Origin: Bugula neritina
Lineage: Eukaryota; Animalia; Bryozoa
NCBI GenBank assembly: GCA_964035545.1
Contig: OZ037766.1
Span: 30,168,274 to 30,232,273 of the forward strand
Direction: 5' to 3'
Length of the DNA: 64,000 nucleotides
Position 1 is the stretch's first letter, and the number at the start of each line of letters is the position of its first letter. The notes under the pieces were generated by a model. The model ran no database searches. It had not been told where the DNA came from and worked only from the letters and a program-made list of their open reading frames with translations. Shown in pieces: positions 204 through 57,720 of the stretch. The position numbers and the translations under genes are program-made.

Positions 204-1378
204 ATGAGAGTTTGGATTCTGATAGCATTGATACTGAGCGCAGCAGTAGTGTTGATCTCTTCACAAAACGAAGCAGGTTTTCCCTCTGGAGTCTCTCTTC
301 GTAAGTTCTTAAGATACAATCCTTTAGACAGAGGTAGTTATATAGCTCCAAAAACTGGCACAGTAATGTAATTGTTATGTTTGTGAACTTTGCTCCTAGA
401 TTGTAGTAAACAAGTTTTTACAATTGGTAAAATATTTAGCTCAATAGACAAATCAAGTTAAAATTGAATTATCGTAGTAATTTTACTGATCAGTTATTTA
501 TTTTTAATTTTTGCATGACATCAATTTTTTTTATTTTTTTTTTATTTAATATTTTATTAGTAGAAAACTAGTTGAAATTACAACTATATTGATAAAATAA
601 ATCACTGAATTTTAATACTTATCAGGAAGTTATATTTGCATCTTCTCAGAGTATGTATTGAAAAACTACTTTCTATTTCAAAAGTTATTCACAAGTCTTA
701 ATTTCTATGACATGCGTTTCATTTATTATTTTAGCTTGCCAGGCCTGTTTACGTACTCGTACTCAAGCATGTTTTCAGCGTTTAGGAGGTGGTAGGGGTG
801 GTAGAGGTCGTAGGGGTGACAGAGGTGTCAGGAGAGGAAATAGAAGAGGGGGCAGGAAAGGTAGAAGAGGGGGTAGAAAAGGAGAAAGAAGAGGTAGAAG
901 AGGGAGCAGAAGAGATAGAAGAAGAAGTAGCAGGAAAGAAGGAAGGAGAAGTAGAAAAGAGGAAAGGAGAAGTCTCAAGATCCAAGCTCAGTTCTGCAAT
1001 GTAGAAGCAGCAACACTTTGTACTAGTCTTTGTCAGCCACCAATTCAAGCACCCACCTTAGCACCAATCACTTCAGCACCAATCACTTCAGCACCAAACA
1101 CACCACCACCAATTATGCTACCTTTAATTACACCACCACCAATTACACCAGCTCCTATTACACCAGCACCAATTGCAGCTGCACCAACCACTGCTGTAAT
1201 AACCAAACCAACGTTAACCACTGCTGCACCAACTGCAGCTGCTCTAACCCCTTCAGCGTTGTTCATACCAGCAGTAGTTGTACTACCACCAACCACAACT
1301 GTACCAACAACCACAACTGTACCAACAACCACAACTGTACTAACAACTACGGTAAACCCAATGTACCAAGGTAAATGA
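204..1378 (+). CDS. Secreted Cys-motif / cationic-insert / Pro-Thr-stalk protein, copy 1 (intact, 246 aa); join(204..300,735..1378)
   Basis: Exon 1 MRVWILIALILSAAVVLISSQNEAGFPSGVSL (signal-peptide-like) ends at gtaagt 301. Acceptor ttag 731-734; a phase-1 join gives PCQACLRTRTQAC-(74 aa R/G/K-rich)-CNVEAATLCTSLC-QPP, then ITPAP and PTTTTV repeats, ending YQGK*. Exon structure is identical in copy 3. Confidence 0.85.
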
Positions 1379-2200
1379 AGATAACCTCTGAGTAGAAATT
1401 ACTTTTTTTTTATAACGTGTATAAAACTAGAACAAAACGTATTGTGGTTATAGAAAAAATATTTAATACAAATTCCTGTATGTTAATCTTCCATATACAC
1501 TTTTGTTCAGTAGTTTATATTTAATTTTCTACATGCTCTGTTTAAAATATAACAATAATTATAATAAATATGCATATGTGGGTACTTTCATGTGTGCAGT
1601 GTGTCCAAGCATTTAAATCTGTATTTTAAATAAATTCATTTTTTACCCGCAATTATAGTCTGTTCAAACTACTAATGAGTAATTTGTCCATGTGTTCACA
1701 TTGCATCAGTTTTGACTGACCAAGCTTATAGCTGCTTTAAAGGATTATTATTTTAACTGATTATAGTTAGTTAAAATTTTAATCTATTTACCAATAAGAG
1801 TTCATGCAATAGAGCATATAATCAGTCTGTCTTACAGTGAGAAATATAAGTTTAGTAGCCAAATGATCACTATAGGATCATTCACTATTACAACTCAGTC
1901 AAACTTAATAGCTTAGTCATATATAATCAAATGTATCATGATTTTTCTAAATCTCAAAACATTTAGTTGAACATAATATCATCAGGCTCTTTTACAGAGT
2001 TTAGTCAGAAATAATAACATATATTATAGTTCTGTAAAAGTGTATTGTTAAATAATGATGATTTTAGCTTGTGGAACAAATGTAAGAGCTCAGCTAATCA
2101 TTCTCAGATAACCACCAATAATATATGATATCATCGCCAAACTGAATTTTAAGTGCTATAAGCAGTGCTAAAACTACACAGCTGTAGTACAGCATTTTAT

Positions 2201-2334
2201 AAAATTAGGCTGTCATAAAGCTATAAAATATGCATCTATAGATGCATATTTTACACGTCTTAAATAAAATAGATGATACCATCAACAAGTATGAATCTCT
2301 AATTTAATAAATAGCTTTATGACAGCCTAATTTT
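2201..2334. mobile_element. Small MITE-like inverted-repeat element
   Basis: aaaattaggctgtcataaagctat (2201-2224) is inverted at 2311-2334, with an internal palindrome at ~2224-2253. Confidence 0.55.
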
Positions 2335-3769
2335 CCTGTATTATAAAATTACGTATTATGATGAAGTAGATACTAATTTCTTTTCATTGTTTTGGTGTAT
2401 TTACTTAATAACATCATCATTTTTAAAATACAAATATGTCCTGAGATTTTGAGTTTTTTTAAATGATGTGACTTAGTATATATAGGACATAAAAAAATAC
2501 ATACATATATAACCTCATTATAAAATAGTTTTAATTTTTAGTTTGTTGAACTAACCAACATCAATGCTGCCAATACAGTTCAAATACTCGTGGGGATGCA
2601 ATAGTCGTCATATCTGTGTGATAACCACTGACTGAGAGTTTTTTTAAGAAGACTCTGTCACCATTGTGGCGAAATAGTAATTGTGACTAAATGCTCTCCC
2701 TAAAGTCATCAATGCGTGACCATTAATGGTAACTAAACTACTAAATAAGTGTTTACAAATGCAGCAATGTAAATTCTATAGACAACGCAGTTTCACCCTA
2801 ATATAATAATAAATTAGTTTGCTGTCATATTATATATATTTTCTTGGCACAGTCTTCAAAGCCAAGTCTTCTACATTTTCTAAAAATATGTGGCTTGATT
2901 AAATTATGAATAAAACTTTTTGATTTATTACAGATTAAGAATTATAATATCTTTTGGATTGGCAAACATTATTTAATTTACCAGAAAAACCTCAAAAAGA
3001 ATTTTGATTTTATTCTAGTTTGCTAACAAAATGTATCTTTGCTATTAAGATGTCATTTTTATGATTAATAGATAGAACAATCGAAACTTAAAAGCAACTT
3101 AAAATGTCTAATTTGCAAAAAAAATTAGGCCTGAGGTTTTATGATAAAATGAATTTTTGGCCAACTTTTCTAACCTATTTGTCGTTGGAAACATTTAAAA
3201 ACAAAAAGCTTTTTAGAAAATAACAATAAAATGCTATGAGACAGTAAACTCAGTTAAATTTCCAAAGCTACTCACATATATATCAGAATGCTTTTGTACT
3301 ATTTGAAGGTTATGATAGATTAGCAATTAAAGTAGTTGTAGAAGAAGGTATCCAGCTAGTTCAACCAAAGTTTTTCAATGGCAATTGTGAAAAAAAAACT
3401 GTCAGTCATGTGTTGATGTCTTTTTTCACTAAAACCAAATGCATAAACATTTTACTCACTCAGATAGAGCCAATCATGTGCCTGTAAGTTTGTTGGCACA
3501 ACCCGCTTTTATAGTTATACGAAGCAGGCTAAACCGCCATGTGGAAAATTTGAATCAGTGCCATTTTTCTTATAACACAACTTGTTTTAAGTATTTATGC
3601 AAGCTGGAAAGTGATTTATTATAGAGATTAACAATAAAAAGCACGAAAAGATGAATAAATATTATTATAAACAAATAACAGCAATTTTTGATATGATCTG
3701 TCATATTGCAACCATACATTTTACATCTTTATAAGAATTCTGGAAACGCTTTAAAATTCCAAGCAGCAA

Positions 3770-4430
3770 TTTTGTATATGATGCTGTTTCTTATTTTTGC
3801 TATCAAATAAAGTTTACTGATTATTTAAAATCTTAAGTTAATTTATTTCACGCTTGTAACTGGACATATCAGCAATGTGTAACATCAGAACTTGGCAAAC
3901 ATTTCTAACGATAATCACCATTCCAAAAACTACAGAACTTCTTTTGAAAAAGTTATCAATTTCAGATGAAGCATGCATGTGGCTAAATTTTTCAATTTGA
4001 CTTTAGGAGTTTAGTATACTAAAAACTTTTATATTATAATTGAAAACCAATTGCTAACATGGATTGTGATGTGGGAATATCGAAAATTGCAATATTTTTT
4101 TATCTAAAACAATTGGGAATTTTGTGTCTAGCGCTTAATAGGGGGTAAAATTGAGTTTTAATATAACAGTGCTTGCCTGTATACAAGACATATTATTCAC
4201 AGTGCTAACATAAAAGGTTTTATGAAATGTTAGTTGAAGAAACTCTGAAAAATTTTGAATTTTTATTGAGTCAATAAATTAAATAAATGTCATCAATTGT
4301 AGAGTTGATGAAAGTATTAATTCTATTTTTAAAGATTTGCCTTATCCACATATTAAAACTCATATGTTAAAAATAATAGTTATTTCAACACTATTTTCAA
4401 AATCATCACAATGACTTCAGGTTTTACAAA
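3770..4430 (+). repeat. Paralogous 3'UTR/poly(A) and downstream flank of the secreted gene family, displaced ~2.4 kb from the copy 1 stop
   Basis: 3780-4080 aligns by eye with 15342-15640 (copy 3 3' end, including tatcAATAAA at 3806-3811 vs 15367-15372). 4215-4335 aligns with 55830-55955 (copy 5 flank). Confidence 0.75.
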
Positions 4431-4434
4431 GCTC

Positions 4435-4733
4435 TTTGAGTAAGCATATATAGCTACATATTAATGTATACATGTCACTAAGTTTTTAGATTGCAATCCT
4501 ATATTGACTTGTATCTGTGATTATTCAAATGTCACCTGTGAAGTTGTTGTATATTCATACCAGTTGTAACATTTTAAGCTTGACCACAGGTTTTTTAACA
4601 TAATAACCGTAATCTTTGTAAAGAAAACTCTACAGGTGACATTTGAATAATCACAAATACAAGTCAAATCTAGGATTTCAATCTAAAAACTCAGTAATTT
4701 GTATACTTTATTATGTAGCTATGGTTACTCAAA
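4435..4733. mobile_element. MITE-like foldback element
   Basis: ~110-bp imperfect inverted repeats at 4435-4545 and 4626-4733 (e.g. tgtgattattcaaatgtcacctgt / acaggtgacatttgaataatcaca). Confidence 0.6.
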
Positions 4734-4737
4734 AAAT

Positions 4738-5022
<285 letters not shown>

Positions 5023-5789
5023 TATTATGTCTGTCATATATATATAAGTGATCAATAAAATATATGGCAACTGTTGCTGTCTACACATAATTAAAATAAA
5101 TGCATAATCCTCGTTAATACTGAAACCCCATGCCGAATGCAAGTTTAAACCCTTTGGTGCTTATAGTTGGTTTAGAAGCAACTGATAATAGACATGATAG
5201 GGAAGTTAGTAGCAGCTGCCCTTAACTGCTTTGTTTAAGATAGTAAGCTTCTAGCATTCCTACAGATTTCCATTATTCTCCTAATACTATCATCAGCAAC
5301 TACAAACAGTGTAGCAGTTCGTGGATGTTAGGAGATTCCTTGGCATGATGTCATATGATTTACATACCATATAACAATGAGCTGCTATGCAGAGCTTTTT
5401 GGTATGAGTTAGGAGAAGACAACTCCTGGGAGTAAAATTATATCTATGCTTCTAATAAAGTTGATGATAAAGTGTTTTTGCTTGTGATTTCGTGTTTTAA
5501 TTAACATTTACAATCATGCTAGTACACGTATGTTTTATAAGGAAGGAGCATTGAGGTTTACTAAGATTTTCTTTTGTTATTCAAATTAGTTAAATGTGTT
5601 AAGATATTTTCAATTATGTGGTACCACTGTTATTGTCTTAAAACTCAAAAAATTCTTTTAGTTTTATAGTTCGTGTTGTGAAAGCAAGGACATGAAACGA
5701 CTGAAAAAAAAGAAAAAAGTGCAAAAATTTTCCTATCACAGCGACTGTACACAGATTAAGACATAATGCTCTCACTTTATGGTCAGTAA

Positions 5790-6020
5790 TTGAGTTCTCT
5801 ATAACCATCCAAGTCACAGCTAGCATTTTTTAAGGCTCGTGACTCTTAGATAAACTCCTAGAGTCACTTGAGCTCTCTGGTTTAAGCTTACACACCGTTT
5901 AAATATGCTTTAGTGAAACTACAATTTTTTATACTATAACTATTGCGAAGCTGTGGGCCATGGTACTCTGTTCTGTGCTGAGGAGGGGACAAATCCCAAA
6001 ACAGCTGCTGTACACAGATT
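5790..6020 (+). mobile_element. Non-coding hammerhead-bearing repeat (Penelope pLTR/retrozyme-like), degenerate copy
   Basis: Homologous to 27671-27897 (gctcgtgactc...tagagtcacttgagc...tattgcgaag.tgtgggccatggtactctgttctgtgctga). It ends at a microsatellite. Confidence 0.7.
5972..6018 (+). ncRNA. Type I hammerhead ribozyme, probably inactive (GAAA to AAAA)
   Basis: tctgtg CTGAGGA gggg-acaaa-tccc aAAA cag-ctg-ctg TA cacaga. All stems are intact; the core G is lost, consistent with CpG decay. Confidence 0.65.
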
Positions 6021-6069
6021 GACACACACACACACGCGCGCGCACGCACACACGCACGCACACACACAT

Positions 6070-6240
6070 GTAGAGTAGAGTAGAGTAGAGTAGGGTAGGG
6101 TAGGGTAGGGCAGGGTAGGGTAGGGTAGGGTAGGGTAGGGTAGGGTAGGGTAGGGTAGGGTAGGGTAGGGTAGGGTAGGGTAGGGTAGGGTAGGGTAGGG
6201 TAGGGTAGGGTAGAGTAGAGTAGAGTAGAGTAGAGTAGGG
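6070..6240 (+). repeat. (TAGAG)n/(TAGGG)n pentamer array
   Basis: Seen directly. Confidence 0.95.
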
Positions 6241-6282
6241 TAATGGTAACGGTTGGCAACGGTTGGTAACAGTTGGTATATA

Positions 6283-6393
6283 ACAGTACAAAAATTTCAA
6301 CGGGTGGCTTTTACAATGCAATGCAACCCGGAGAAATTTCAACCCGGCCAAATTGAAATTTTGACCGAAAATCGTGAAGGTATAAACGCAACT
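6283..6393 (+). mobile_element. Right end of a PIF/Harbinger-type MITE
   Basis: Near-identical to 19257-19367; ends in TIR aggtataaacgcaact followed by TTA. Confidence 0.75.
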
Positions 6394-6831
6394 TTACTAG
6401 ATTTTAAATGAAAATGGAACAGGCATTAATGACACAGGTAAAAATGGCACACAGATGTTAAACTTTTCCAAACCCCAAACCTTTATCCCAAACTCAAATC
6501 CCCATTCTAAACCATCAAATTTTCATATGGAAAGTGCGTCATTTTTATCTGCTTTTTCATATGTGTTATCTTAATACCTGTGTCACTTTACCAATTAAAC
6601 ACTATGTTACTAGCATCAGTGTACTTTAAATCGTGATTCAATATTCATTAGGCTATTTGAAAAAACTATAGCCAAAGTTAAAGTAAAGTTGTTTTTAAAA
6701 TAACAAAATAAGTTTTGATACTGATGACCAAACTTTTTTTTCTCCGAATATTTAGATAGTAAATTTTAAAATTTCAAAGATTATTTACTGCTTTTCATTG
6801 TTATGGCCCAAATTTGATTGTTTTCTTTCAG

Positions 6832-7486
6832 ATTGTCAAGACTGCTTACGTACTCGTAGTCAAGCATGTCTTCGCCGTCTAGAAAATAGTAGGAGAGGTA
6901 AAAGTAGTAGAAAAGCCAGAAGAAAAGGCAGAAAAAGTATAAAAAAAGGAAGTAGAAGTAGTAGAAAGAAAGGGGGCAAATCTGCAAGGAGAAATAGCAG
7001 AAGACAACAAAAGAGAGATGACAGAAGAGCTAGAAGAAGAGGTCTTGGGAACAGAGCTCAACTCTGCAATGTAGCAGCAGGACAGCTCTGTGTTACTTTT
7101 TGCCAGCCGCCAACCTCAGCAACTACACCATTTCCAATTACTCCAGCACCAATCACCCCAGCACCATTCACACCACCTCCATTTATACTATACCTGTCAT
7201 TACACCAGCACTCATTACACCAGCTCCTATTACACCAGCTCCTGTCACTGCTGCACCACCAACTCCCGAACCAACCTCCACAACAACCTCTGCACTAACC
7301 CTAGCACCAACCCCTTCACCAACCCCCGCACCAACCCAAGCCCCAACTCCAGCACCAACCACCACAACAACCACCACAACAACCACCACAACAACCACCA
7401 CAACAACCACCACAACAACCACCACAACAACCACCACAACAACCCCCACAACAACCGCTGCACCTGGTCCAAAGGGAAAAAGATGA
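6832..7486 (+). pseudogene. Secreted-family copy 2 (exon 2 only, frameshifted; exon 1 not found)
   Basis: Acceptor tttcag 6826-6831. CQDCLRTRSQAC-(65 aa basic)-CNVAAGQLCVTFCQPP is intact. An extra TA at ~7191 relative to paralogues (cca ttt atg cta cct) shifts the Pro/Thr stalk, which ends PKGKR* in the other frame. AATAAA at 7656-7661. The upstream intron (homologous to 53805-54228) is cut at 6394 by repeats. Confidence 0.75.
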
Positions 7487-13633: not shown

Positions 13634-13853
13634 TCATGGTAACGGTTGATAACGGTTGGTAACGGTTGGTTATATAATAAGAAATGTTGGTCTGATATAT
13701 TATAACAGTAAAGATGAAATACAACCCGTGAGTCTCTAGGGCCTAGCAATTTACTCAACTGGCAATATTGTCACTGTTTCAAAATTAATCTCACTGAAGC
13801 ATATAAAGTCAAGATTAAGGATCTACAGGTTTAATTACTTTGAGTATTTGGAG

Positions 13854-14046
13854 TATAAAAAGCCTGATTATGAAAACAAAAGTTAGTCTATTGAAGGCAG
13901 AAAAGGCACAACATCAAAAACTTTAAGGTGAAGAATGCTTTTCTTGATAACTAGTTATATATTTGTATTTTTCATATTCAAAAATTAATAAAATATAACA
14001 AACTTGATCTCTACTTATAATATACTTACAAATTTTTTTGAAGAAG
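13854..14046 (+). promoter_or_regulatory. TATA/Inr promoter and 5'UTR intron of secreted-family copy 3
   Basis: TATAAAA 13854-13860, TTAGTC 13883-13888 (~30 nt downstream), donor aag|gtgaag at 13928, T-rich acceptor ending gaag at ~14043. Confidence 0.55.
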
Positions 14047-14052
14047 CTGAAG

Positions 14053-15201
14053 ATGAGAACTTGGATCTTGATAGCATTTGTATTGAGTGTAGCAGTGGTG
14101 TTTGTCTCTTCACAAAACCAAGCAGACTTTTCCTCTGCAGTATCTCTGTGTAAGTAATTTAATTCTTTATGATTATATGTTATTTTTGTAAATTTTGTTA
14201 TTAGATTGCAGTAAAGTGATAGTCAAGTGATTGGGCAAATTTTTAAACTTTTTCAGACAAAAGAAATTGGAAAAAAGAATTATCTGAATGTCTTAATTGA
14301 AGCTAATTGTTTTGACTTTTCTAGCATTAGGAAATATGTCTGCTACTTTGTATACTGTTGATAAAAATATAGCAAATTAAATTTTGATACCTATTACGTA
14401 ACTGCATTTTATAGAGGTCAAAAGGAAATTATACTTTACGTCATTTCTATGGCCAAATTTTGATTTGTTATTTCAGCATGCCAAGCTTGTTTACGTTCTC
14501 GTACTCAAGCATGCCTTCAGCGCTTAGGAGTAGGTAGAGGAGGCAGGGGTGGTAAAGGGAAAAAGAGAAAAAATAAAAGAGGAGACAGGAGAGGCAATAG
14601 AAGAGCGGGCAAGAGCAAGAGAGGCAATAAAAAAGGGGGCAAAAGAAGTAAAAGAAAAGGGGGCAAGAGAAGTAAAAGAAAAGGGGGTAAAGATGGAAAG
14701 AGATCAGCTCGAATTTGCAATATAGAAGCCCAGCGACTCTGTATTAGCTTTTGTCAGCCACCAGCCCCAGCACCTACACAACCACCAATCACACCAGCTC
14801 CAATTCGTGCAGCACGAATTACACCAGCACCAATTATGATACAACTTATTACACAAGCACCTATTAGACCAGCACCAATAACACCACCACCAATTACTGC
14901 TGCACCAACCACTGCTGCACCAACTACTACTACACAAGCCATCGTCGCACGATTCGCTGGCGCAATCATCTTCGCACCAGCACCCACTACAACAACAACC
15001 ACTACAACAACAACACCCACTACAACAACAACACCCACTACAACAACAACACCCACTACAACAACAACACCCACTACAACAACAACACCCACTACAACAA
15101 CAACACCCACTACAACAACAACACCCACTACAACAACAACACCCACTACAACAACAACACCCACTACAACAACAACTTCAACGCCAGATAAAAGAAAATA
15201 A
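14053..15201 (+). CDS. Secreted Cys-motif / cationic-insert / Pro-Thr-stalk protein, copy 3 (intact, 273 aa); join(14053..14149,14477..15201)
   Basis: Exon 1 MRTWILIAFVLSVAVVFVSSQNQADFSSAVSL, donor gtaagt 14150, acceptor tttcag 14471-14476. SCQACLRSRTQAC-(67 aa K/R/G-rich)-CNIEAQRLCISFCQPP continues in frame into ORF 14836..15201 with (PTTTTT)n and ends PDKRK*. AATAAA at 15367-15372. Confidence 0.88.
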
Positions 15202-15945: not shown

Positions 15946-16030
15946 ATAACTTAAGGTAATAAATAACAATTGTTCTAATCATGTTTTGTAGTTATGAGTG
16001 AGAAAATTTGTGCTGTGAGGCCCTACACCT

Positions 16031-17325
16031 TGATTGATTGATTGATTTTATTTCTATCACTAACCTGATATATGTTGTGCCAAAAAAAGGTGTTGAATAC
16101 CGATGCCCCTGATATTAAAAATGATAACAGTGTAACATACATGGCTTAAAAATAAGAATAAAAAGTCTCTGAGGCTGGAAATCAATTGACAAAAATTATT
16201 ATACAAGTTTATTTAGCTTGAGTGCTGCCTGGCGTATAAAAGAATCTCTGCCCCATGCATGTGCTTCTGTATTTAATAGTACGATATCGTCCTGATGGGC
16301 CCTTTTCAAGAAAGTCCTTTAGAAAATGATTGTCATCATGTATATATTGCAGTAGCAAGATTTTAGTTCTGACATCTATTAGATTGTCGATATCCCCAAG
16401 ATCTTTGATGCGCCTAGTTTGAGTGCCTCTTTAAAAAAGTGCCGGAGTTGCTTTTTATCTTTAGCATACAGGGAGATGTAAAGAATGGGCAGACAGTAAG
16501 TAAGAAGGGAGATAATAAAACTTTTAAATAGCATACTAGCCAGGGTGGTTGAACAAAGGTAAACAAAATTTCTAACAATATATAACATTCTTTGACTAGC
16601 TTTTGTTGCCACAGAGTTAATGCGCTCTTCAAAACGAAGTTTGTTGTCTATATCCATACCCCTACATATTTCACATTGTCACTAAAACTGATACTAACAT
16701 GATTCAAAATCATAGCAGGGGTGTCTGGCTAAATCCTGTTAGTGGAAAACAATATTTCTTGGGTCTTACTTGGGTTCAACAAAAGGGCTAAGGAATTACA
16801 TTCATTGGATATTCTATTTACTTCAAAAAAATAATTACTCAAAGCAGACTCATCCGAAATACAACCTATTACACAAGTGTCGTCTGCATATTTTAAAATA
16901 GTGACATTATATACTAGTTTGAGATGTAATTCCATCAGTGTAAACAGAAAACAAAAGAGGGCTTAACACAGAACCTTGGGGAGTGCCTGTAAAATTGGTA
17001 ACAATAGGCTGAGACATATAGTGCCATCAACTAATGTTCTTTGAACTCGGCCACTGAGGAAACTGGTTATTCATCCTGTTACATTACAGTCCAGATGTTG
17101 TAGCTTAGGTATAAGATGACTAATGTTTATAGTACTAAAAGCAAAAAAGAGAAATCTAGGAACAGGCATGGTGAGTAATTACAATTAGCTTGTCCGTCAA
17201 TAAAATTAGTAACAGTCGTAGCGAGGCAGAGCGCTGCATCCTGGGTTGAACGGTGTGAGCGATAAGCAAACTGAAATTTATCCAAGGGAGTGTGGTTAGA
17301 GATGTAGTTCTTCATAAGTCTCTCT
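16031..17325 (-). mobile_element. 5'-truncated, frameshifted non-LTR retrotransposon (L2/CR1 group, Rex-Babar-like) RT
   Basis: Minus-strand motifs LDKFQFAYRSHRSTQDA, LFLDFS, GTPQGSVLSP, LKYADDT, LNPSKTQEI, KASQRML across three ORF pieces; 3' tail (ATCA)n at 16031-16046. Confidence 0.85.
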
Positions 17326-18918: not shown

Positions 18919-18920
18919 CA

Positions 18921-23159: not shown

Positions 23160-23560
23160 TTCATAGAAAAGTTAAAAGAGAAATTAGAAATAGTAAAGGG
23201 GGCATATCTGGGAGGAGAAGTAGCAGAAGGCAACAAAATAGAGATGACAGAAGAGCTAGAAGAATTGAGGTCTTGGGAACAGAATTTAAATCTGCAATAT
23301 AGAAGCAGGAAAACTTTCTGCTATTTTTTGCCAGCCGCCAACCTCAGCACCTACACCATGTTCAATCACCTCAGCATCAATCACTGCAGCACCATTCACA
23401 CCATCGCCATTTATGCTACCTTTCATTACAATAGCACTCATTACACCACCACCAATTACATCAGCTCCCGCTTACACCAGCCCCTACAGCACTGCAGCTC
23501 CAGTTACGACTGCACCAAAAACTACTGCAACAGCAACTGCTGAACCAACTCTAGCGCACC
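23160..23560 (+). pseudogene. Secreted-family copy 4 (5'-truncated exon 2 remnant)
   Basis: Matches copy 2 (RRSSRRQQNRDDRRARR...GNRI*ICNIEAGKLSAIFCQPP) but has an in-frame stop, a Cys to Ser change and frameshifts. The homologous 3'UTR/flank continues to ~24120 (AATAAA 23728-23733). Confidence 0.8.
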
Positions 23561-25393
23561 AAATAAAAAAATGCATTTGAAAGCGTGGCATCTGTGCGGT
23601 GGGCTGTATTGAATTTCTTCGATCAGTTGATGGTTTTCATACTATGCAAATTAACATGTTACTTTGTAAAACTATAATTATTTAGAAAGTTTTAATGTCA
23701 ATACTAATTTTGTAGTTTTAGCTATGAAATAAATTTTATTAGTCAATTGAAATCATTAGCTAAATTATGTAACTTTTTTTACTATATACGCACTTCATTT
23801 GTTAAACATTTCTAACTTGAATAGTCATTTCAAAAATTTCACAAAAAATGTATACTCTAATATAGTACCCAGCTACAATTAATTTCTACGCTATTATATA
23901 GTGTCCAGCCACCATTAATTTACATTCTAATCCAGCGTTCATCCACAATTATTTTGCACGAATCTGTTACTCAGTCTCAAAGCTTTTAGAAGTAAGTTCT
24001 ATATTCTTTAAATTGCTGTTATATTTTGTTTGGAGCTGCAAGAACATGGATTATAATGAGTTTGTGTTACAGTATGACTGTATTGATAGAGCGCTATAAA
24101 TAGCAGCTAACAACCAGGTTAAACCATAAATAAGTAAATAATGTAGTGGATTCTGGCCCCTTATGTTGTCATCCTCCTGGCATATAGTTTATAATCTCAC
24201 ATTCTCAGTATACCTGCTAGTAGATACTGAAATAAAAGGGCTAAGTATTATGAGTACCATAATAAGCAATTGACTGAAAGCAAAACAATTGTGCATTTGC
24301 TAGTTTTTCTTTCTTGTTATATAAAAAGCATTTTATGCTTGAAATTTGCACTGCTTAGCTTTAATTTTTTTTTCTAATTGAAAACTTATTTCTGTTTTCA
24401 AAGATTTATAGAGAAAATTCATCACCAATATTTATTTAGTTGAAAAAACTGTAAAAAGAAGAACTTTTAGTCACAAGATTAAAAATAATTTTCTTCTAGT
24501 TGATTATTAAACTGTTTGAAAATAAGTTTATTGCACAGTTTTTCTAATAGGCTTATGAGCTTACACAGATTAGATTTACATTTTGGTCAGGGTTTATGGC
24601 CACTGGCAAATCAAATGAAAACCATTAATTCAGCTGCAAACCAATTATAGAAAGATTCAGCTGAAGATTAGTTAAAAACTACAGCTTAAGATCAGCTTAA
24701 GATCAGCTTACCACAGATTAATGAACTCTATCTTGATTTAGGTGACAAGAAATGTAGAGTTTTAATCCAAGACTTATGGTTTAAGTTCGTTTGTGAACTA
24801 AAATGCGTCTGCTAACGTGCCTCTGGCAAGGCAAGGTTATTGCCCCCTTTACTTATTTAATCAAAAGCATTAACATATGACTAGACCAGAGAGGGCGCAC
24901 AGGTTGTGTTCACAGAAAGAAAGATTGTTCCCAGCGCTTTTTATTGTCTTTATAGCCTGCACCACACCTATAATACTTGCTACACCTGCACTTATTTTAA
25001 TCAGAATAGAAATTTATCAGATTAGTATAAGCTTAACAATATTTAGTTGTAGCTCTGAAACCACTTAGTTATTCTGTCAATGCTACTTTTTACAATTATT
25101 ATGTAATCATCATCACTAGCTCTGAATGAAGCTAAACAGTGGTTGGCAGAGCAAAAAGTGCGATCAATGCTACAACTAAATAATTTATGTTCAAGCAAAA
25201 CTTTATTTACATAAGAATTATGGAACCATTGGCAGTTGTTCACCTAACAACATTATCCGTTCACATGTGCACTGATGATGACCACAAAGCTTAAAAAGAA
25301 GCTATGATAGAGTGAACACCCTAGTTGATCACTATATTTGGGCTATTTTAAATAGTGCTTCCCAGTTAGATGCTATTTATATATTTTCATGCA

Positions 25394-27897
<2,504 letters not shown>

Positions 27898-48090: not shown

Positions 48091-51020
48091 CCCCACTAAC
48101 AATTTACATTGATATGACGTTGTATAAACGTTGGAAAAAACGTTTATTAAATGTTTAAATGTCGACACAATTTTGTACTATATACAACGTTTGAAACAAA
48201 CGTTTATCGCAAAACGTTTTACCAACCTTTCATAAACGTTGCGTTGCATAACGTTGTGTAAATGTTTTTCATACAACGTTGGTGAAAGGTTGCAATCTAA
48301 CATTGCTTAAATGTTTAAATTTAAATGTATCTCTTTGTCTCGCACAACGTTTAGGCAACAACGTTTTCTGCAAACCATTTTACCAACGTTTCATAAACAA
48401 GTAATACAAACGTTGCCATAACATTTCTTCGGCAACGTTTTTATAATGTTGCAAAACAAGCGTTATCTAGATGTTGAAATGTAGACGTTATTTAGCTTTT
48501 TTATCTAAAACGTTCTATAAACAACTTTTCATAAATGTTATTATAATGTTGTATAAACTCTATGCAGCATTGCAAATTTAGGTTATCATAATTATTTGGC
48601 AAGGTTTACATATAACCATTGCTATATTAAAGTATATATAGCAGTATAATATATACAAGTGGAAGTTTTATATTGTGTATTGATAACTTTATTGTTTAAA
48701 AGTGAAGAGCAATAATTACAAAAAATAATTGTTACTAAAAAAACATGTGCAACCTAATATAAAGACTTATTTGTCAATTTAAATGAGCTAAAAAAAATTA
48801 CATATAAAAAAATGTGGCTAATAAGTAGATAAATAAATTTATATTGAAGCTAATGCAAACATTATAGATAGCAACAGCTCATAAGAAATACACAAACAAT
48901 TTAAGCAGCCAAAAAAGTAAAGCTAATTTACAAATGTTGATTCAAAACATAGCTATTTAGTAAAGTCAACAAAGAAAACATTTCCGTATATAAGCAAGTA
49001 AACGAAATAATACCAATTATCATTTTAGAACGTTAATCCCTTTATATCCAAAGCTGAACATTAGCAATGAGCTTTATTTACGCTTTGGAGATTTAAAGTT
49101 ATTTTAGCTTTCTTATTATTAAGCTTCATCTAAAATTGAGGTCCAACTGAATGTTACAGATTAGGCTTCTGAAGACTGTGAATTCAGTCTGCTCATTCTT
49201 TTCCTCAAAATATATATTTAAAGCTTCAAAGTCTTGCTGCTCTTTACAGTAAGATGGTGACCACCTACAAAGCAACAAGAATACTGACTAGAAACAAAAA
49301 ACATTCAATGTAAATGTATATATAAACTGTGGTAAAATGAAGTCGTGCTTAAGAATGTGTTGTGAAAATGGATGGACAAATTCAAATTTTTGTATATTTT
49401 TCTATAAAGATGACAAAAAATTTGATATATTCCTAAATGGGTAAGCAACTTCGACCTTATGTGCATTTCACTATAAAATGACAAACAAGGGTGATCAGAA
49501 ATAGGTGACAACTTCAAGTTTATGTAAGTTTTGCTATAAAGATCGCAAACAAGACAGTTCTTAAAATGGGCGGGCAACCTCAATTTTACCTAGATTTTAT
49601 TATGAAAATGACTAACGAGAAATTGTTGGAAACTGGGTGGACAACTTCAATTTTATGTACATTTCACCATAAAATAATATGACAAACAAGAAGGTTGGTA
49701 ATTGATTGGCCAACTTCAATTGTATTTACATTTCACTATAAACAACTAGCAAAAAAGTTAAATGGGGGGCAACTTCAATTTCATGTACATTTTACTATTC
49801 ATATGGCAAATAAGGGTGTTCAGAAATTGGTGGACAACCGCAATTTTATGTATATTTCACTATAAAGATGGCAAGCAAGAGTGTTTAAATATTAGTGGGT
49901 AGCTTCAATTTAATGTACAATTCACTATAAACATGACTAGCAACAATGTTTTTAATATGGGTGAGCAACTTTAACTTTATGTATATTTCACTATCATGAT
50001 GGCAAACAAGACTGTTCAGATATTGGTCAGTATTTTTAATTATTTTACATTTCACTATAAATATAAAAAAGATTGTTCAGAGATTGTGGGTACCTTCAAT
50101 TTAATATAAATTTTGTGTACATTTAACTATAAAAATGACTAACAATAGTGTTTGGAATTGGGTGTGCTAGTTTTACTAAAAAGATGACTAACAAAACAGT
50201 TGGAACATAGGTAGGCAACTTCACCTACATTTTGCTATAATGATTATTAACAATAATGTCTGATCATAGGTGGGCGACCTCACCTTCATACATACTGTTC
50301 TATAAAGATGACTAATAATTGGAAACTTGTGAAAATAGGTGGGCAACTTCTAATTCATGCACATTTTACTATAAAAATGACCAACAAGAAAATTGGGAAA
50401 TGGGTAAGCAACTTCCAGTTCAATTCCAATAACCTACTTTAAACTGCTAAATATTACACTTTTCAAACAATTATTGATATAATGACCTAACTTTGGATAT
50501 AATATTATCAGTGCATAACTTATTTATTTTTATTTATAAACTGAAACTTTAGACTTTTTGAAAAGTTTGGTCAATATTATAAGGCAAGAGGTGATGTATT
50601 AAATACTCCTTTCAAACATTACAAGCTTCAAATAATCAGAGTTGTGCTCACCAAACTATCAATAAGTTCACATAGTGGCACAGCTGTGCATTCCTTCATA
50701 TACAGTGTGTAAATTACAGATAACTTCATTGGTATGACCATAAATTCACCTGAATAGCCAAGTACAGGGAAATAGCTAAACTCCTAACATTCAATGTAAG
50801 CAAGGTATAGATAGGTTCTTCTTGATGCACAGCCTGGGTAATTTTCTTATCAAGTAATCACAGGTGTGAGAATGGCTCAAGGGAAATTATTATTTTTAGC
50901 CCACAAATAATAAAATATGCACAGATTAAACTAATAATTAAAATAGGTTTTAACAAACTATTTTCTGGCAAAAAAGAAATATTTTGGAAAAAACTATAAT
51001 GGTATAGGTTGAAGGGGTTA
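48091..51020. mobile_element. Putative DNA-transposon relic, copy 2 (contains ~65-bp array at 49365-50420)
   Basis: Begins ccccactaacaatttacatt like 8011 and is colinear with 8011-11300; a further degenerate piece lies at ~52735-53390. Confidence 0.6.
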
Positions 51021-51158
51021 GGTGCAAAATGCATAACTATGTTCATGAAAACATTAATTATGCATGTGTACAGTATTCGAGCTATAAAATTTCTATATTA
51101 TATAAACTACTTGCTTGGAGCAAAATCAGCAACTTGGAATAATTTGAGGAATAAAATT

Positions 51159-52098
51159 TGTGATGGCTGCTGTCATTTTTGGTCTCTTGGGGGTCATCCA
51201 AGATTTCTACTTTTTGATGTGGATGAATAGAGTAGGACTTTGTGATCACATTGCACTTTAAACTTTTGAAATCAGTCAAATAGAACCAGAGATATGCCCG
51301 GTTATGCACACAGCGGTCCACAACAAACGACTTCTATTATTGCGAGTAATTAACAGTCAAAGTTCGGCGACTTAAAATTATACTAAATTCGTTGTTTATC
51401 TACCTAGCAACAGTGTCTTCAATTAGCTCCATCAGCCCAAAAATTAGTTACCAGGGGTAGTTTTTTATGCTGATCATGAAAATATTCATTTAAAATTCAT
51501 ATCTGCAATATCTTAATCAATATTTAAGAGTTGAGTTCAGTATAATGAGAACATTTTGATGATTATCCTAAGAGATTAGTACTATAATGCCACGTGGTTT
51601 CATAATTAAAATCCAACTCTTTTGGATCACTGTTGTCACTAAGTTCATCATTAGTATTATGACCACTACTCTTCAGTCCTTGTCCTTAATTTTCAATGTA
51701 GAAACATTCTTTTAAATTGTCAACATCTGTTATCTATTAACTTGCAGTGCGATCCAGTCGCCATGTTTATTATTAGTAACAATTCTCAGTCAAATTATAC
51801 TTAACTACGTTACGCTCTACACTACGCCGCTATTTTAACTATTGTTAAAGGTCGCGCTATTATGCTCTAATCACGTGACCAGCTTGCCAACCATGGAATG
51901 GCTCATTAAAACACCAATCATTCATAAACCATAGCAAATATCACAAAACTGATTGGACAGCTGGAAAGAGCACATGTTAATTGACTATTATACACTAAAA
52001 GCTGAAATTGACCTATTTATGACAACTATAGATAAAACCCCTTACAACTAACAATAGCGAATAATGCCAAGAGACCAAAACTGACGGGAGCCATCACA
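51159..52098. mobile_element. Non-autonomous TIR element (~940 bp)
   Basis: ~32-bp TIR tgtgatggctgctgtcatttttggtctcttgg / ccaagagaccaaaactgacgggagccatcaca; no long ORF. Confidence 0.65.
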
Positions 52099-53465
52099 TT
52101 TATGGAGATGATTAAACAATTTCAATTTGATGTAGGTTATACTGTCATTTTAATTAACCTTCTTTAAATTTTATCAGTGACTTTGGCTTTAAGCCGCAAA
52201 TTTAATATTTCAGTAATTAAAAAATAAATAGCAATTATACACACAGAGTTAAATAAATTGCGCCGAATTCAAATTCAAGTTTTTTTCTCTCAAATTATAT
52301 AGTAAGTATTAATTTGTTCACAACTATGCTGATTGCATGTGTTAATCACTGTGTCGTGACATTCATGCATGAACGGATATAATCTACACGCACATACTGC
52401 TTGTTTTATAATAAACACAATATGAAGTATAATCTGAATTATTCTAGAAAGAATTAGCAGTAATTTGGAGTTATTTATCCAATAAAGCTTTATAAAGTGG
52501 GTACGAAACTTTTAATTTATGTATGATCTACTAACCACTATGCCATAACTTGATGATTTTTGTTCAATTGAACAGAATTGCATTGTCAAAAAAAGGTGCA
52601 ACCTGCATATTTAGATAAAAGCATGAAAGATTGCCTTTAATTAGTATGTATGTTCAAACAAGGAATTAGTATACATAACATTTGATTAAATCAAAGACTA
52701 TAACAAAGTTGTTATTTAAGGCGATTTTAAAGAGTAAGTAGGCAACCAAAATTTATTGTAAATTTTACTGTAATGATGACCAGCACAAATGTTGTGAAGA
52801 AAGTAGGAAACTTCAATTCAAAATAGGTAATCATGCACTCTGTCTAATGAAACTGGCACAGACTAAAAGGGCATAGGTAATAACTAATAATGGCACAAGT
52901 AATTTAATGGAAAAATGAAATATTACAGTAATTGAGTGCCTTGATGATCAATTTAAACATGTAAAATTTTCAATCAACTCGAAAATTATTTTACAATAAC
53001 CTATGAGAAAAAAAGCAAAGTACTATTTTTCAATAGTTGCCTTTAAAACTTAAAAGATTGTATTCATAATGATTATTTATAGATTGCAAGCAATCTAAGC
53101 ATTGTGCCTAGCTTCACCAACATTACAAGAACAATATCGTTGGGAGTTGTGCTCACCATTTAATCAAACATGGTGGAACTTGTGCATTTCACAAATTTAC
53201 AGTATGTGCATAATTGGTACTATTACAAATTACCTTCTTAGCCAAATTATACTTGGAAATTGCTGAAATCCTATTTATCCGCCTATGCAGTTCTAGTTGA
53301 TGCCAAGCCTAGATATTTCTTATTAGCTTCAAGTAGTCACAGGTGTGATAATAGCCTGAAGAAAATTTATACTTGTTTGCCTGCAAATAATATACACATT
53401 TAAAGGATTGCTCGATCTTAGTTTATTACAATCAAATTATAATTATGAGCTATAATTTAATGTGT

Positions 53466-55125
53466 ATGCAAACAATTGTGACTTTGCAAAGGGATATAAC
53501 ACTTGTTGTGAGCGTAGGAGTTGTGTTTGTATCTTCACAAAATTAACTGAGCTTTTCATCTGGACTATCTCTATGTAAGTTTTAAAAATACTATTTTCCA
53601 GACAAAGGCAATCACAAAAACTAAGTCCCTATTTTTTTGCTAATCTTTATAAAGTCTGTAATACGATTGTTGCAATTAATACCATCATATATAGCAGCTA
53701 CATTTGGTGAAGACTGTTTAATTTTTTATCTGCAAAACAAGTTCGAAAACCAAATAATTGTATAAGGCTAATAATTTTACTCAAGCTGATTTTTGTCATC
53801 TTAGTTACTGGATTGTAATTGAAAATAGCACAGACAACATTGACACAGGTACAAATAGCACACTGATGTTATACCTTCCCAAACCCAAAGTTCAAACTCT
53901 TATCCCGAACTCAAACCCTCATTACCAACCCAAAATTCTTCATTTAGAAAATATGTCTTTATTATCTGTTTTTCCATTTATACCTGCGTTATTTTACAGA
54001 ACACCATGTTACTAGCATCAGTGTAGTTTCTATGATTTGATATTCATTTGGCTTTTTGTAAAAACTAGTCAAAATGACAATTATTTTTAAAATATTAACA
54101 ACCTGCATTGTGATAGTGATGATCACACTTCATTTTTTCTCTAAATATTTAAATAAAAACTTTTCAAGGTTCATAAACTATTTACTACTTTTCATTGTTA
54201 TATTGCCCGAATTCAATTGTTTTTTTAGCTTGCCAAGACTGCTTACGTACTCGTACTCAAGCATGTCTTCGTCGTTTAGAAACTAGGAAGGGAGGCAAAA
54301 CTGGTAGAGCAGTTAGAGGAAGAGACAAAAAGAGAGAGAAAACAAAAAGCAGAACAAAAAAGGTGGAAAGAAAAAAGGCAAAAAAAAGAGAAAAACAAAA
54401 GGGCAAAAAAGTTGGAAGAAAAGGAAGCAGAAGTAGTGGGAAAAAAGGGAGCAGATTGCAGATAAGAGAAAAAGTAGGAAAAGTAGCAAAAAGCAACAAA
54501 GAACTAGAAAAACTAAAAGAAGTCTTGGAAACAGAGCTCAACTCTGCAATGCAGAGGCTCAACAACTCTGTGCTATTTTTTGTCAGCCACTAACCACGGC
54601 AGCAACGCCATTTTAAATCATCCCAGCACCAATCCCGCTCCAGCACCATTTACATCACTATCATTTTTAATACCTTTGATTACAATAGCACCCAGTACAT
54701 CAGCACCAATTGCACGAGCTCCCCTCATACGAGCTACTACTACACCAACACCAACAACCACTGCTGCACCAATCATTATTGGACAAGGTTTTGCTGGAGC
54801 AATTTTTGCTGGACCCGCACCAACTCCCGCGCCAACCCCAGCACCAACTCCCGCGCCAACCCCTGCACCAACCCCCGCACCAACCCCCGCACCAACCCCG
54901 CACCAACCCCCGCACCAACCCCTGCACCAACCCCCGCACCAACCCCCGCACCAACCCCCCACCAACCCCTGCACCAACCCCCGCACCAACCCCCGCACCA
55001 ACCCCCGCACCAACTCCCGCACCAACCCCCGCACCAACCTCCGCACCAACCCCCGCACCAACCCCCGCACCAACCCCCGCACCAACCCCCGCATACCAAT
55101 TCCTGCGCCGGGAAAAAGAAGATAA
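53466..55125 (+). pseudogene. Secreted-family copy 5 (both exons present, disabled); exon 1 ~53466-53574, exon 2 54229-55125
   Basis: Exon 1 remnant ...ITLVVSVGVVFVSSQN*LSFSSGLSL|gtaagt has TAA at 53544-53546. Exon 2 CQDCLRTRTQAC has a longer basic insert with a frameshift, then GNRAQLCNAEAQQLCAIFCQP, a stop, (PAPT)n from a 12-bp repeat, and ends APGKRR*. AATAAA at 55289-55294. Confidence 0.8.
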
Positions 55126-57302
55126 ACAAAACTATTATTAAAAGCAGTAATCCTTGCATGAGCAGCTGGGTGTATTTCAGTTTTTTTCTTTTGATAGTTT
55201 TTACAATTGATAAACAATATTTTTTTGCAAAACTTTGTCGAGTTAACAAGTTTTAGTGCTAATACTGAATTTGTATCTGTACCTAACAAATAAAGTTTAC
55301 TTGTTATTTAACATCATATTTTAATTTCATTTTTTTCACTTTTCACTACACTTTAAGAATGAGCGACATCACAATTTGTTAAACATTTCCAACTAAAATT
55401 GTTTTCTCAATGCTCGAAAAATTTATTTTGAAAGCTTTACTTGTTTAAAATAGAACTAATGGCTAAGTTTTTAAATTTGACTAGCAATGTTGAATCTAAA
55501 TAGTTTCTATGATACAATTGATGGCCAATTATACTGACACAAATTGTAATGCTAATCTTGAATTAAAATAAATTTTCATCTAAATTAGCTTTAGTATCTA
55601 TAGTATGAAATTAAAAAAATACTTATTGCTGCAAATCTTCAATTATGAAGATTTGTTTTATATCTACACACCTATTTATGTGTCACATTCTTGCGATTTA
55701 TTGCATTTAAGTTTTCTTTGGTTTCACATGACACATGCAGCATAACATTAATATTTGAGAAGCTAAATCAGTGTTTTATGACGGTTTCTGGGCACAAAAA
55801 ATATCTGTTTAATAATGCACTGACGTATAAAGTTTCATAAAACTTTAGTTGAAGACATTCTAATAACTTTTAAATGTCTAAAGAGATGGTAACTAAATTG
55901 AATGTAGTTCAGCATGCAGTTGTAGAGTTTACCCAACTATTAATTCTATTTTTAATTAATTGCTGAAGTTTCTACATTTTTATTTCATATGTTATAAAAC
56001 ATTTGTTATTTTAATACAAGTTTTATAATACAGTGTCAAAACTTTTATACAAGTAAGTTGCAGCATTTGGTTTGCTGTTACTTTTGTGTTGAGTTGCAAT
56101 AATATAAATTATATTTAGTTTGTTTATTGATAGAGTACCAGATAGAAACTGACAACCAAGTGAAACCAGAAATGAGTAAATGCATTAATGTCAAGTGTCC
56201 ATGTGCTGCTAATTGAGTAATAAACAGCTGACATAAGAATGACAAAACATCAGTTTGTAAAATGGAAACAACAATCGCACCACATTTTCATTTCTTCACA
56301 TGCTACCCAAAAACATGGGTGCTCAGAAAAATGAATTTAAGGTTGAGGCTTGCATAAACTTATAGTTGGGTTTTCATTCTATGTAACTGTTTACAAACAT
56401 CTCATAACAATTATTTGCGTAGTTTAAAGCTTGACAACGTAGTGATTGTGAGTGCGGTTTGATGCTTATAGGGTAAGATTGCGTCTGGTAAAATATGTGT
56501 TACATTTTATGCAGTTTATAGTGTGTGACCCATTCTTTGTTATGTTGTGTGTAGAATATTTTAAATCAAAATGAGTATAGTTTAGTTGCATACTATATTG
56601 AATCAAAGCATGACTGCATAAAATCTGCGCAGAATGAGGTCTAATAAAAATTAATTAGTTTCTGGATTCAAATAAATATTTAAAAAGGAGAAATACCAGT
56701 TTTAGTGTTTTAGACATGTTTACTGCTTGTTTTAAAAATTGAAAATTTAAACTACTGTATGTTGAGATATTTATATTCAAATATTTACTAGTATATAGGC
56801 TGTAACTGCATTTCAAAGCCACAACGTGATTTTTGACACGGCATATGTTTAAATTTGATGTAACTTTATTGACTTTTTGTTTCCTGGTGAAAACCCTGTT
56901 TTCACACTATGAGATGCAGATAATTACATTCTTTAATTCGACTATTATATAGTTTCTTATATGACTGACATTCAACTTTGACAAATAAGTGTATGAAAAA
57001 CTACATACTGCGTTGATTGTAGCAATAAGTTTCAACTGCCTTACTTGTATAAGTTATATGGCATTAGCGTGATGCCATCACGTGATCCCATTACATCACA
57101 CTAAAGCCACAAGTATGATATCACTGTCAACAGAAAATAAACAAAGATGAAGGCATAAAAGATTGCGGAGGTTAATAATGCCTGGAAATTTAATGTAAGA
57201 AGGAATATGTGTAATTAACTAAAATTAATGTTATATAGTATAGGTATCCTTTACATATGCAGTACGAAAACTTCTGTAGCCTTAGGTATATATGTTGTTT
57301 AG

Positions 57303-57720
57303 CTTGCCAAGTATGCCTACGTACAACAGGGGAAAAAGATGGAGGAATGGAAGAAGGGGTGGCAACGCTAGAAGATCTGGAAGGAGAAGTCTTGGAAAAA
57401 TATAGTTCAATTCTGCAACACACAAACAGGAACACTCTATGCACCAGTCTTTGGATGTCAACCATTTACCACAGCACCTATATATACACTTCTTCCAATT
57501 ACTTCAGCTCCAGTCATTCTAGCTATAATACTCATTCTATAGCACCAACGACACAGCTGTACCAATTATAACAGATGTACCAATTATAACAGATGTACCA
57601 ATTATAACAGATGCACCAATCACTGCTGTATCAAACACTGACGAGCTATATAAACTACACCTGCAGCACAACACATACCAAAACCTCTAACTGCTCTTGC
57701 AGTACCTATAATGCAACTTA
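57303..57720 (+). pseudogene. Secreted-family copy 6 (heavily degraded exon 2)
   Basis: tttag|ct tgc caa gta tgc cta cgt (CQVCLRT), shifted RRGGNARRSGRRSLG, VQFCNTQTGTL, CQP and ITDVP repeats; several frameshifts. Confidence 0.7.

Follow-up and report, generated by a model that had tools for sequence, protein, structure and literature searches.

The 64,000-nucleotide stretch of Bugula neritina DNA analysed here (the window) carries six same-strand (+) paralogues with a cysteine clamp that is a stand-alone hairpin module, common to these long genes and to compact, AMP-like paralogues nearby. Because the compact genes have the same cysteine frame, signal exon and intron, we conclude that the window genes are loop-expanded, Pro/Thr-tailed members of one family with them. 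In our best explanation, to which we assign a probability of about 0.45, the window genes encode the long form of a secreted cationic family of Bugula, a polycation that serves in host defence or coats surfaces. The six copies that the original prediction had claimed are present as five exon-2 Cys frames, starting at 737 (g1), 6834 (g2), 14479 (g3), 54231 (g5) and 57305 (g6), together with a 3' fragment near 23290 (g4). Two genes, g1 and g3, are intact, and the other four are broken and are described as they stand.

3-10, + strand: putative TATA-like box of g1
exon to 81, intron 82-189, + strand: putative non-coding first exon and 5'-UTR intron of g1
204-300, + strand: coding exon 1 of g1 (97 coding nt, ATG at 204), hydrophobic leader and short spacer, phase-1 donor
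301-734, + strand: predicted phase-1 intron of g1, GT..AG
735-1378, + strand: exon 2 of g1
737-772, + strand: N-terminal Cys helix of g1, C-x2-C-x7-C (helix modelled for the equivalent g3 segment)
773-994, + strand: polycationic loop of g1, 74 aa, Arg+Lys 46%, net charge +28, 15 dibasic pairs
995-1033, + strand: C-terminal Cys helix of g1, C-x7-C-x3-C (again modelled for the equivalent g3 segment)
1034-1378, + strand: Pro/Thr-rich tail of g1, 114 aa, ending Gly-Lys-stop, an amidation-type signal
6393-7486, + strand: g2 (type 2), remains of the intron followed by exon 2, leader exon missing upstream, reading frame shifted by 2 nt near 7189; a broken copy in this assembly
13854-14052, + strand: putative TATA box, non-coding exon and 5'-UTR intron of g3
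14053-14149, + strand: coding exon 1 of g3 (leader)
14477-15201, + strand: exon 2 of g3, with Cys helices at 14479-14514 and 14716-14754 flanking the loop at 14515-14715 (67 aa, net charge +31)
C-terminal part of g3 exon 2, + strand: Pro/Thr tail, 148 aa
15367-15372, + strand: AATAAA of g3, its surroundings homologous to those in g2 (7656), g4 (23728) and g5 (55289)
23170-23790, + strand: g4 (type 4), 3' fragment only, with stops and frameshifts and Ser in place of the fifth Cys
53496-55125, + strand: g5 (type 5), leader exon lacking an ATG and interrupted by an in-frame stop; exon 2 also broken by frameshifts and a stop
57303-57720, + strand: g6 (type 6), exon 2 strongly degenerate, loop shortened, Cys frame incomplete

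Exon arithmetic gives predicted spliced lengths of 246 aa for g1 and 273 aa for g3 and agrees with the 97-nt leader exon and phase-1 intron proposed for both genes, the GT..AG boundaries having been read in g1. The protein architecture also stands as predicted: both genes have exactly six cysteines in two clusters (C-x2-C-x7-C, loop, C-x7-C-x3-C), the insert, put at 65-74 aa, measures 74 aa in g1, 67 aa in g3 and 65 aa in g2, and the tail is rich in Pro and Thr (49% in g1 and 66% in g3; 49-69% across the intact genes).

TATA-like boxes lie about 200 nt 5' of the ATG and are followed by a putative donor and, 11-16 nt ahead of the start codon, by an acceptor; the TATA box and the close acceptor were present in 10 of the 11 leader-bearing genes checked. 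This arrangement makes it likely that the transcript starts with a non-coding exon and has an intron in its 5' UTR, which amends the TATA/Inr layout of the original prediction. The poly(A) region, predicted to be homologous in g1 and g3, is so among g2, g3, g4 and g5, and not in g1, whose 3' UTR can be aligned with its own duplicate and nothing else. The leader has a basic n-region, a hydropathy window of about 3.2 and a small-residue c-region, conserved in 11 loci, and would encode a putative signal for secretion. At the other end of the protein, the tail has no membrane segment or GPI anchor segment and is thus a free tail rather than the "mucin stalk" that had been envisaged, and a membrane-anchored stalk was rejected; the tail is probably O-glycosylated, judging from its composition. 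Several types end in a Gly-Lys/Arg motif of amidation type (Gly-Lys-Arg-Arg in g5), at which the C-terminus may be amidated.

The cluster reaches well past the window, spanning about 210 kb with 19 long-type loci, five of them intact and 14 broken, in sequence read as far as 164 kb beyond the window. The intact genes represent three diverged types, with type 3 present in three intact copies, and indels between intact copies preserve the reading frame. Duplicated blocks of 57-76 kb within the cluster are 93-99% identical, indicating recent duplication, and a third block is inverted in part and has a gene content unlike that of the others. Chance open reading frames were rejected as an explanation, since the full six-Cys frame occurs ten times in 264 kb and in none of 60 composition-matched simulated sequences of that length; a genome-wide DNA pattern search for the frame was dominated by TG microsatellites and was uninformative. 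In contigs from run X1, which is DNA because the intron is covered and splice joints are absent, the g1-type gene was seen only as a nonsense version. Short collagen-domain genes lie about 85-100 kb before the window.

Four compact paralogues are located 66-95 kb beyond the window. Their loop is only 9-10 residues long within the frame C-x2-C-x7-C...C-x7-C-x3-C, and their tails are mostly Arg-rich (Arg/Phe/Gly) or Pro/Arg-rich and AMP-like; one of them, compact gene B, joins its six-Cys domain to a Pro/Arg-rich segment and ends in Gly-Lys. Long and compact genes agree in Cys spacing, in where the intron lies and in its phase, and in their upstream layout, and they belong to one cluster. Similarity between their leader exons at the DNA level gave p values of 0.0005-0.09 against codon shuffles, and that between their helices, cysteines aside, is weak (p 0.02-0.6). 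In AlphaFold2 models the compact core is a helix-loop-helix hairpin (helices 3-16 and 22-37, pLDDT 77), and g3 has two confident helices on either side of a disordered loop.

The loops of the long types comprise 65-88 aa with a net charge of +28 to +39 and an Arg+Lys content of 46-49%, and vary freely in sequence and length. Between long types dN/dS is 0.23-0.35, and in the leader exon pN is 0.13-0.16 against a pS of 0.33-0.42. The long family, leader exon included, is under purifying selection, and the regions that could be aligned showed no positive selection.

Sequence searches were made with the exons queried separately. The long type gave no match in Pfam, in a 5.8-billion protein set (single query and profile), in the ESM Atlas (by features) or in JGI metagenomes, and no long-type protein was found among the B. 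neritina protein predictions. The compact type likewise had no match in Pfam, PDB sequences, the Atlas or metagenomes, and fold searches returned background-level scores only. The sole outside homologue is the B. neritina hypothetical protein EB796_000657 (KAF6041036.1), a true family member of compact type and the syntenic orthologue of compact gene D; its accession is mentioned in no paper found in a literature search. These results uphold the predicted lack of fit to any characterised family, with no significant Pfam, PDB, fold or Atlas match, for a family that looks lineage-restricted and secreted.

Cationic peptides built on a disulfide hairpin are already a known kind. Two antiparallel helices with nested disulfides, as proposed for the Bugula family, are found in the disulfide-laddered helical hairpins (alpha-hairpinins/vicilin-buried peptides, thionins, acrorhagin I and Ole e 6), yet their Cys counts and spacings are unlike those of the Bugula family and none has a polycationic loop insertion or a mucin-like tail. 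Shape matches to VBP-8, Ole e 6 and acrorhagin I reached Z 4.0, which is background level. Alpha-hairpinins have two disulfides in the frame C-x3-C-xn-C-x3-C and were rejected on the six cysteines, the first pair C-x2-C and shape matches of only Z 4.0-4.3; thionins have adjacent cysteines near the N-terminus and were rejected for want of such a pair and of a Pfam match. Saposin-like proteins form a four- or five-helix bundle of about 80 aa, in contrast to the two-helix model here, and were rejected on that model, the absence of a Pfam match and a saposin B Foldseek E of 8.7. The minicollagen CRD, ShKT and insulin families were rejected because their Cys motifs and Pfam profiles are absent. The predicted exclusion of these four families thus agrees with the Pfam and fold results. 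The comparisons with Hydra and minicollagens miss the host, a Bugula-like bryozoan, and a cnidarian origin was rejected. Penaeidins, with an N-terminal Pro/Arg domain followed by a six-Cys domain, were rejected since this order is reversed in compact gene B and absent from the window genes.

Penaeidins and myticalins are Pro/Arg-rich invertebrate AMPs; compact gene B is like them in its Pro/Arg-rich segment, and the Bugula family in being multigene, with a conserved leader and a variable mature part. Myticalins have a linear mature peptide, a dibasic site and an anionic C-terminal extension (PMC5577615), whereas the Bugula tails are neutral to basic; with no Pfam match either, they were rejected. 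Turgencins, from the ascidian Synoicum turgens, act against bacteria; their disulfides are nested (C1-C6/C2-C5/C3-C4), one end is amidated and the loop at their centre is cationic (PMC7024374, PMC9696794). Turgencins A and B resemble the Bugula family in being cationic, in their six non-adjacent cysteines and cationic central loop, in a nested-disulfide helix-loop-helix (putative for the Bugula genes) and in C-terminal amidation, for which several Bugula genes have the signal. They differ in Cys spacing, C-x3-C-x4-C-x8-C-x2-C-x3-C (PMC7024374) against C-x2-C-x7-C-xn-C-x7-C-x3-C, in their CXMAC motif, absent from the Bugula family, and in being 36 aa long without long loop or Pro/Thr tail. There is no sequence match between the two, and the likeness is probably convergent.

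In the defence or coating reading, the leader exon would route the protein to secretion, as its hydrophobicity and conservation suggest, and the two short predicted helices would pair antiparallel, stapled C1-C6, C2-C5 and C3-C4, a pairing suggested by their mirror spacing. The stapled hairpin would then hold out the unstructured loop, with its computed charge. In this reading the loop most likely binds polyanionic surfaces, such as bacterial envelopes, biofilm polymers or the acidic cuticle or mucus of the colony itself, and traps, clumps or kills microbes, while the tail would keep the protein hydrated in a surface film. The compact paralogues would be the family's conventional form, resembling AMPs. 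The clamp common to these paralogues favours host defence among the roles originally listed; counting against it are the weak helix similarity between long and compact forms, the lack of positive selection and the make-up of the long loops, of which hydrophobic residues form just 8-14%, with 0-2 aromatics, unlike membrane-lytic AMPs. Broken loci and recent block duplications give the cluster a birth-and-death pattern, and birth-and-death evolution is frequent in immune effector families.

The main rival, which we consider somewhat unlikely, is an adhesive or cuticle component whose loop would cross-link acidic polysaccharide or protein by cohesion or coacervation while the glycosylated tail wets or lubricates. 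A Lys/Arg block beside a glycosylated block (glycosylation being putative in Bugula) is found also in Mlig-ap1 and Mlig-ap2 of the flatworm Macrostomum and fits adhesion as well as defence, and heparin-sensitive Lys/Arg cohesion is documented in that flatworm glue (PMC6410801). One Bugula chain would join roles that are split there between Lys/Arg-rich Mlig-ap1 and glycosylated Mlig-ap2. However, the KR regions of Mlig-ap1 alone exceed 3,600 aa and are accompanied by C-type lectin and vWF domains (PMC6410801), and neither a multi-thousand-residue KR region nor these domains were found in the Bugula genes. A polycation low in hydrophobics with a mucin-like tail, and the neighbouring collagen-domain genes, speak for adhesion; the loop, however, shows no Tyr/DOPA-type enrichment, the relatedness to small AMP-like paralogues and the amidation-type ends point elsewhere, and the loss of most copies, with a nonsense variant in one type, would be surprising for an essential glue.

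Cleavage of the loop by convertases at about 15 dibasic sites, as in insulin-type or buried-peptide precursors, would release short Gly/Arg/Lys-rich peptides and leave a two-chain disulfide-linked hairpin. Dibasic pairs number 14-17 per long loop and R-x-K/R-R motifs 1-3, the Gly-Lys/Arg C-termini imply transit of a processing compartment, and the weak shape matches include a vicilin-buried hairpin. Yet the dibasic sites are expected by composition alone at this Arg+Lys content, the segments between them contain no repeated, conserved peptide and the loop is free to vary. We consider this reading improbable. Still less probable is a decaying expansion, in which a formerly useful long form is now being lost or some copies are alleles assembled in tandem. 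The low proportion of intact loci, the near-identical blocks, the nonsense g1-type version in the X1 contigs and the lack of a long-type protein in the B. neritina predictions would suit it; against it stand the three diverged intact types with their dN/dS, the three type-3 copies with frame-preserving indels and the distinct third block, and the X1 contigs attest presence, not absence.

A bolder version of the defence or coating reading, which we regard as unlikely, is that a small defence hairpin peptide became, by an approximately 8-fold expansion of its loop into a pure polycation and the addition of a mucin tail, a self-anchoring "polycation plus glycan brush" on the colony or its microbes, in effect a coat encoded by genes that prevents fouling or traps microbes; if so, the compact and long states are both to be seen in one cluster of a major fouling animal. 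Bryozoans go unmentioned in a review of AMPs from marine invertebrates published in 2025 (PMC12466427), and the Bugula cluster offers concrete, small, synthesisable candidates. It is fast-changing, and its proteins may serve to defend the surface of the colony or to coat it. A Tyr-rich six-Cys cluster lies about 620 kb away. Because one scaffold carries loops that range from 9 to 88 residues and exchanged tails, how a peptide turns into a surface-coat protein is directly testable, and a hairpin tolerant of such insertions would be a useful display scaffold. Bugula serves as a model for fouling and houses a defensive bacterial symbiont, which makes an effector family of the host relevant to attachment, to biofilm resistance and to control of the symbiont.

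The six same-strand copies foreseen in the original prediction were recovered by BLAST of the two intact genes, g1 and g3, against the window, every one on the plus strand. The features are:

204-300, plus: g1 leader exon (97 coding nt)
301-734, plus: g1 predicted GT..AG phase-1 intron
735-1378, plus: g1 exon 2 (predicted spliced product 246 aa)
14053-14149 and 14477-15201, plus: g3 exons (predicted spliced product 273 aa)
737, 6834, 14479, 54231 and 57305, plus: exon-2 Cys frames (BLAST with the intact genes)
near 23290, plus: g4 3' fragment (same BLAST)

Both g1 and g3 contain exactly six Cys residues in the two clusters expected (C-x2-C-x7-C, loop, C-x7-C-x3-C). The 264 kb read contained 10 instances of the full frame, compared with none in 60 composition-matched simulations of the same length. 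A search of RNA runs returned none containing the window. As for the remaining copies, g2 has no leader exon and is frameshifted by 2 nt near 7189, g4 consists of a 3' fragment, g5 has no ATG and contains stops and frameshifts, and g6 is degenerate. Three finer points of the prediction fared less well. TATA boxes are present, but they lie ~200 nt upstream, before a probable non-coding first exon and 5'-UTR intron; the poly(A) region said to be homologous between g1 and g3 belongs to g2-g5, with g1 excluded; and the proposed mucin "stalk" is not sustained, the tail having no anchor.

The architecture and charge of the long type are established. Its loops (65-88 aa) are 46-49% Arg+Lys and 8-14% hydrophobic, with a net charge of +28 to +39, and its tails (105-148 aa) are 49-69% Pro+Thr. 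The C-termini of types 1, 2 and 5, and of compact gene B, end in Gly followed by one basic residue or a pair of them, the usual signal for amidation (mechanism as in PMC5577615). AF2 modelled the compact core as helices 3-16 and 22-37 (mean pLDDT 77), and g3 exon-2 residues 1-120 as two confident helices with a low-confidence loop between them. Structural alignments of the g3 model spanned residues 1-93 with ~50 aligned, the pattern that packed helices with an unaligned loop would produce. The Cys offsets 0,3,11 and 0,8,12 are mirror images, which suggests nested disulfides. Pairwise dN/dS among types 1, 2 and 3 was 0.23-0.35 (leader exon plus both helices), pN was well below pS in every part, and net length differences between intact copies were multiples of three. 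These values establish selection: the genes, leader exon included, are protein-coding and selectively maintained.

Four compact paralogues lie beyond the window:

window 129.8k (L035:5787-6893), plus: compact gene A
window 133.7k (L035:8828-9713), minus: compact gene B
window 139.6k (L036:5605-6514), plus: compact gene C
window 158.2k (L038:4220-5112), plus: compact gene D

Genes A, B and C share the Cys frame of the long type exactly, with a loop of just 9-10 residues; gene D lacks one base early in exon 2 in this assembly, but the copy in B. neritina GCA_010799875.2 is intact. In all four, the leader exon is similar, the ATG follows an acceptor by 14-16 nt, and the first Cys comes directly after a phase-1 intron. 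Leader-exon DNA was more similar between long and compact genes than in codon-shuffled controls (p 0.0005-0.09, 11 of 12 pairs below 0.03), a similarity to which generic signal-peptide order may contribute in part. Outside the Cys residues the helices are only weakly similar (best, the second helix of gene C, p 0.02), so the case for homology is a joint one, drawn from Cys spacing, leader, position and gene structure. The tails are short and basic in gene A, Pro/Arg repeats with a Gly-Lys terminus in gene B, and a Thr linker, Cys pair and Arg/Gly/Phe stretch in genes C and D; they are interchangeable.

In the 216 Mb assembly the window occupies C2:30168274-30232273, and whole-genome profile searches placed all credible family matches within C2:30.117-30.327 Mb, a lower bound given their first-look sensitivity. 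At least 19 long-type loci extend from -51.6 kb to +113.9 kb in window coordinates, five of them intact (-51.6 kb, -43.4 kb, g1, g3 and an inverted copy at 92.7 kb) and two being orphan leader exons:

window about -7.7k (L028), inverted: leader-exon copy without exon 2
window about 67.2k (L029), inverted: leader-exon copy without exon 2

Block duplications (window -50k to +113k, L023-L033) offset by ~57 and ~76 kb, at 93-99% identity, probably gave rise to the long-type copies, and window ~31-47k recurs inverted at ~94-108k. Family turnover is established. In the g1 duplicate at +76.4 kb (L030), the codon matching window 782-784, just past the first helix, is a nonsense codon. Contigs from DNA sequencing run X1 contained this nonsense version, not that of g1, with nearly all linked variants and a tail 18 nt shorter than that of g1, indicating that the type-1 gene differs between haplotypes. 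Either a loss of type 1 may thus be polymorphic, or tandem assembly of alleles may account for some of the blocks.

The sole family homologue found outside this genome was B. neritina EB796_000657, and the compact form is the one found in both Bugula lineages. The contig carrying EB796_000657 shows synteny with the stretch 82-100 kb past the window, two Rost-family genes included, and DNA identity there is ~72-90%; gene D and its B. neritina orthologue differ by pN 0.07 and pS 0.16. Homology and synteny together indicate that the sequenced animal is probably a Bugula bryozoan close to GCA_010799875.2 but of another lineage. Tandem Rost-family (PF21534) genes flank gene D (L037-L038, window 146k-164k), in synteny with B. 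neritina VXIV02000086.1. COI translates in the invertebrate mitochondrial code. Contigs C73 and C214, which bear COX1, may be co-assembled organisms, a near-full COX1 copy at C6:11.17 Mb (L045) may be a nuclear mitochondrial insert, and contig C17 (L046) carries a bacterial cbb3-like oxidase.

The predicted novelty withstood searches of Pfam, PDB sequences, Foldseek, VIA-align and the ESM Atlas, with exons as separate queries, none of which gave a significant match to a characterised family or otherwise. Shape matches to the disulfide hairpins acrorhagin I, VBP-8 and Ole e 6 reached just Z 4.0, a background level. Saposin, alpha-hairpinin, thionin, penaeidin, myticalin and Mlig-ap1 memberships were excluded on family criteria, and turgencin membership by differing Cys spacing and motifs. 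The literature covered, which leaves out most subscription papers, yielded neither a citation of EB796_000657 nor a description of such a bryozoan family. The family is real, uncharacterised and restricted to Bugula; cationic disulfide-hairpin secreted peptides are already known, and the loop-expanded, mucin-tailed form is what is unusual. Turgencins are nested-disulfide hairpins bearing a central cationic loop (PMC7024374, PMC9696794), and by analogy the Bugula family may work similarly.

We favour, at a probability of about 0.45, host defence or surface conditioning through electrostatic binding of polyanions, on the basis of the AMP-like compact paralogues, amidation signals, birth-and-death turnover and turgencin analogy. 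We infer that the leader directs secretion, that the two helices are stapled as a hairpin, that the tail is glycosylated and that some C-termini are amidated; the cationic loop would then bind polyanions, with trapping, clumping or coating as the outcome. Classic membrane lysis would call for a less polar loop than the long type has, which makes these outcomes likelier than pore formation. A further reading, in which the protein forms a polycation-brush coat, seems unlikely. A role in glue or cuticle cohesion, modelled on Mlig-ap1/ap2 (PMC6410801), seems rather unlikely. The long loops hold 14-17 dibasic pairs, and a precursor processed by convertases is a still weaker candidate. We consider it very unlikely that the expansion is decaying or partly artefactual.

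Several other elements accompany the cluster. Just upstream (window about -99.6k to -84k) lie several short collagen-domain genes with Cys-containing flanks:

L020:1090-1536, L020:5436-5813 and L039: collagen-domain genes (PF01391 in the two tested)

Broken ORFs at window 25389-26787, which we take to resemble a Penelope-like reverse transcriptase end and GIY-YIG endonuclease, gave no match in a Pfam search; they adjoin a long (TA)n tract, with a second copy at about -31k. What are presumably short LINE-like reverse transcriptase 3' fragments (window 16379-16657, minus; about -41k; 90.3k) adjoin each type-3 gene. A Bel/Pao LTR retrotransposon (L034:1963-7023, window 116-121k), with a 1,279-aa open frame containing DUF1759, Peptidase_A17, integrase zinc-binding and DUF5641 domains, separates the long and compact gene groups.
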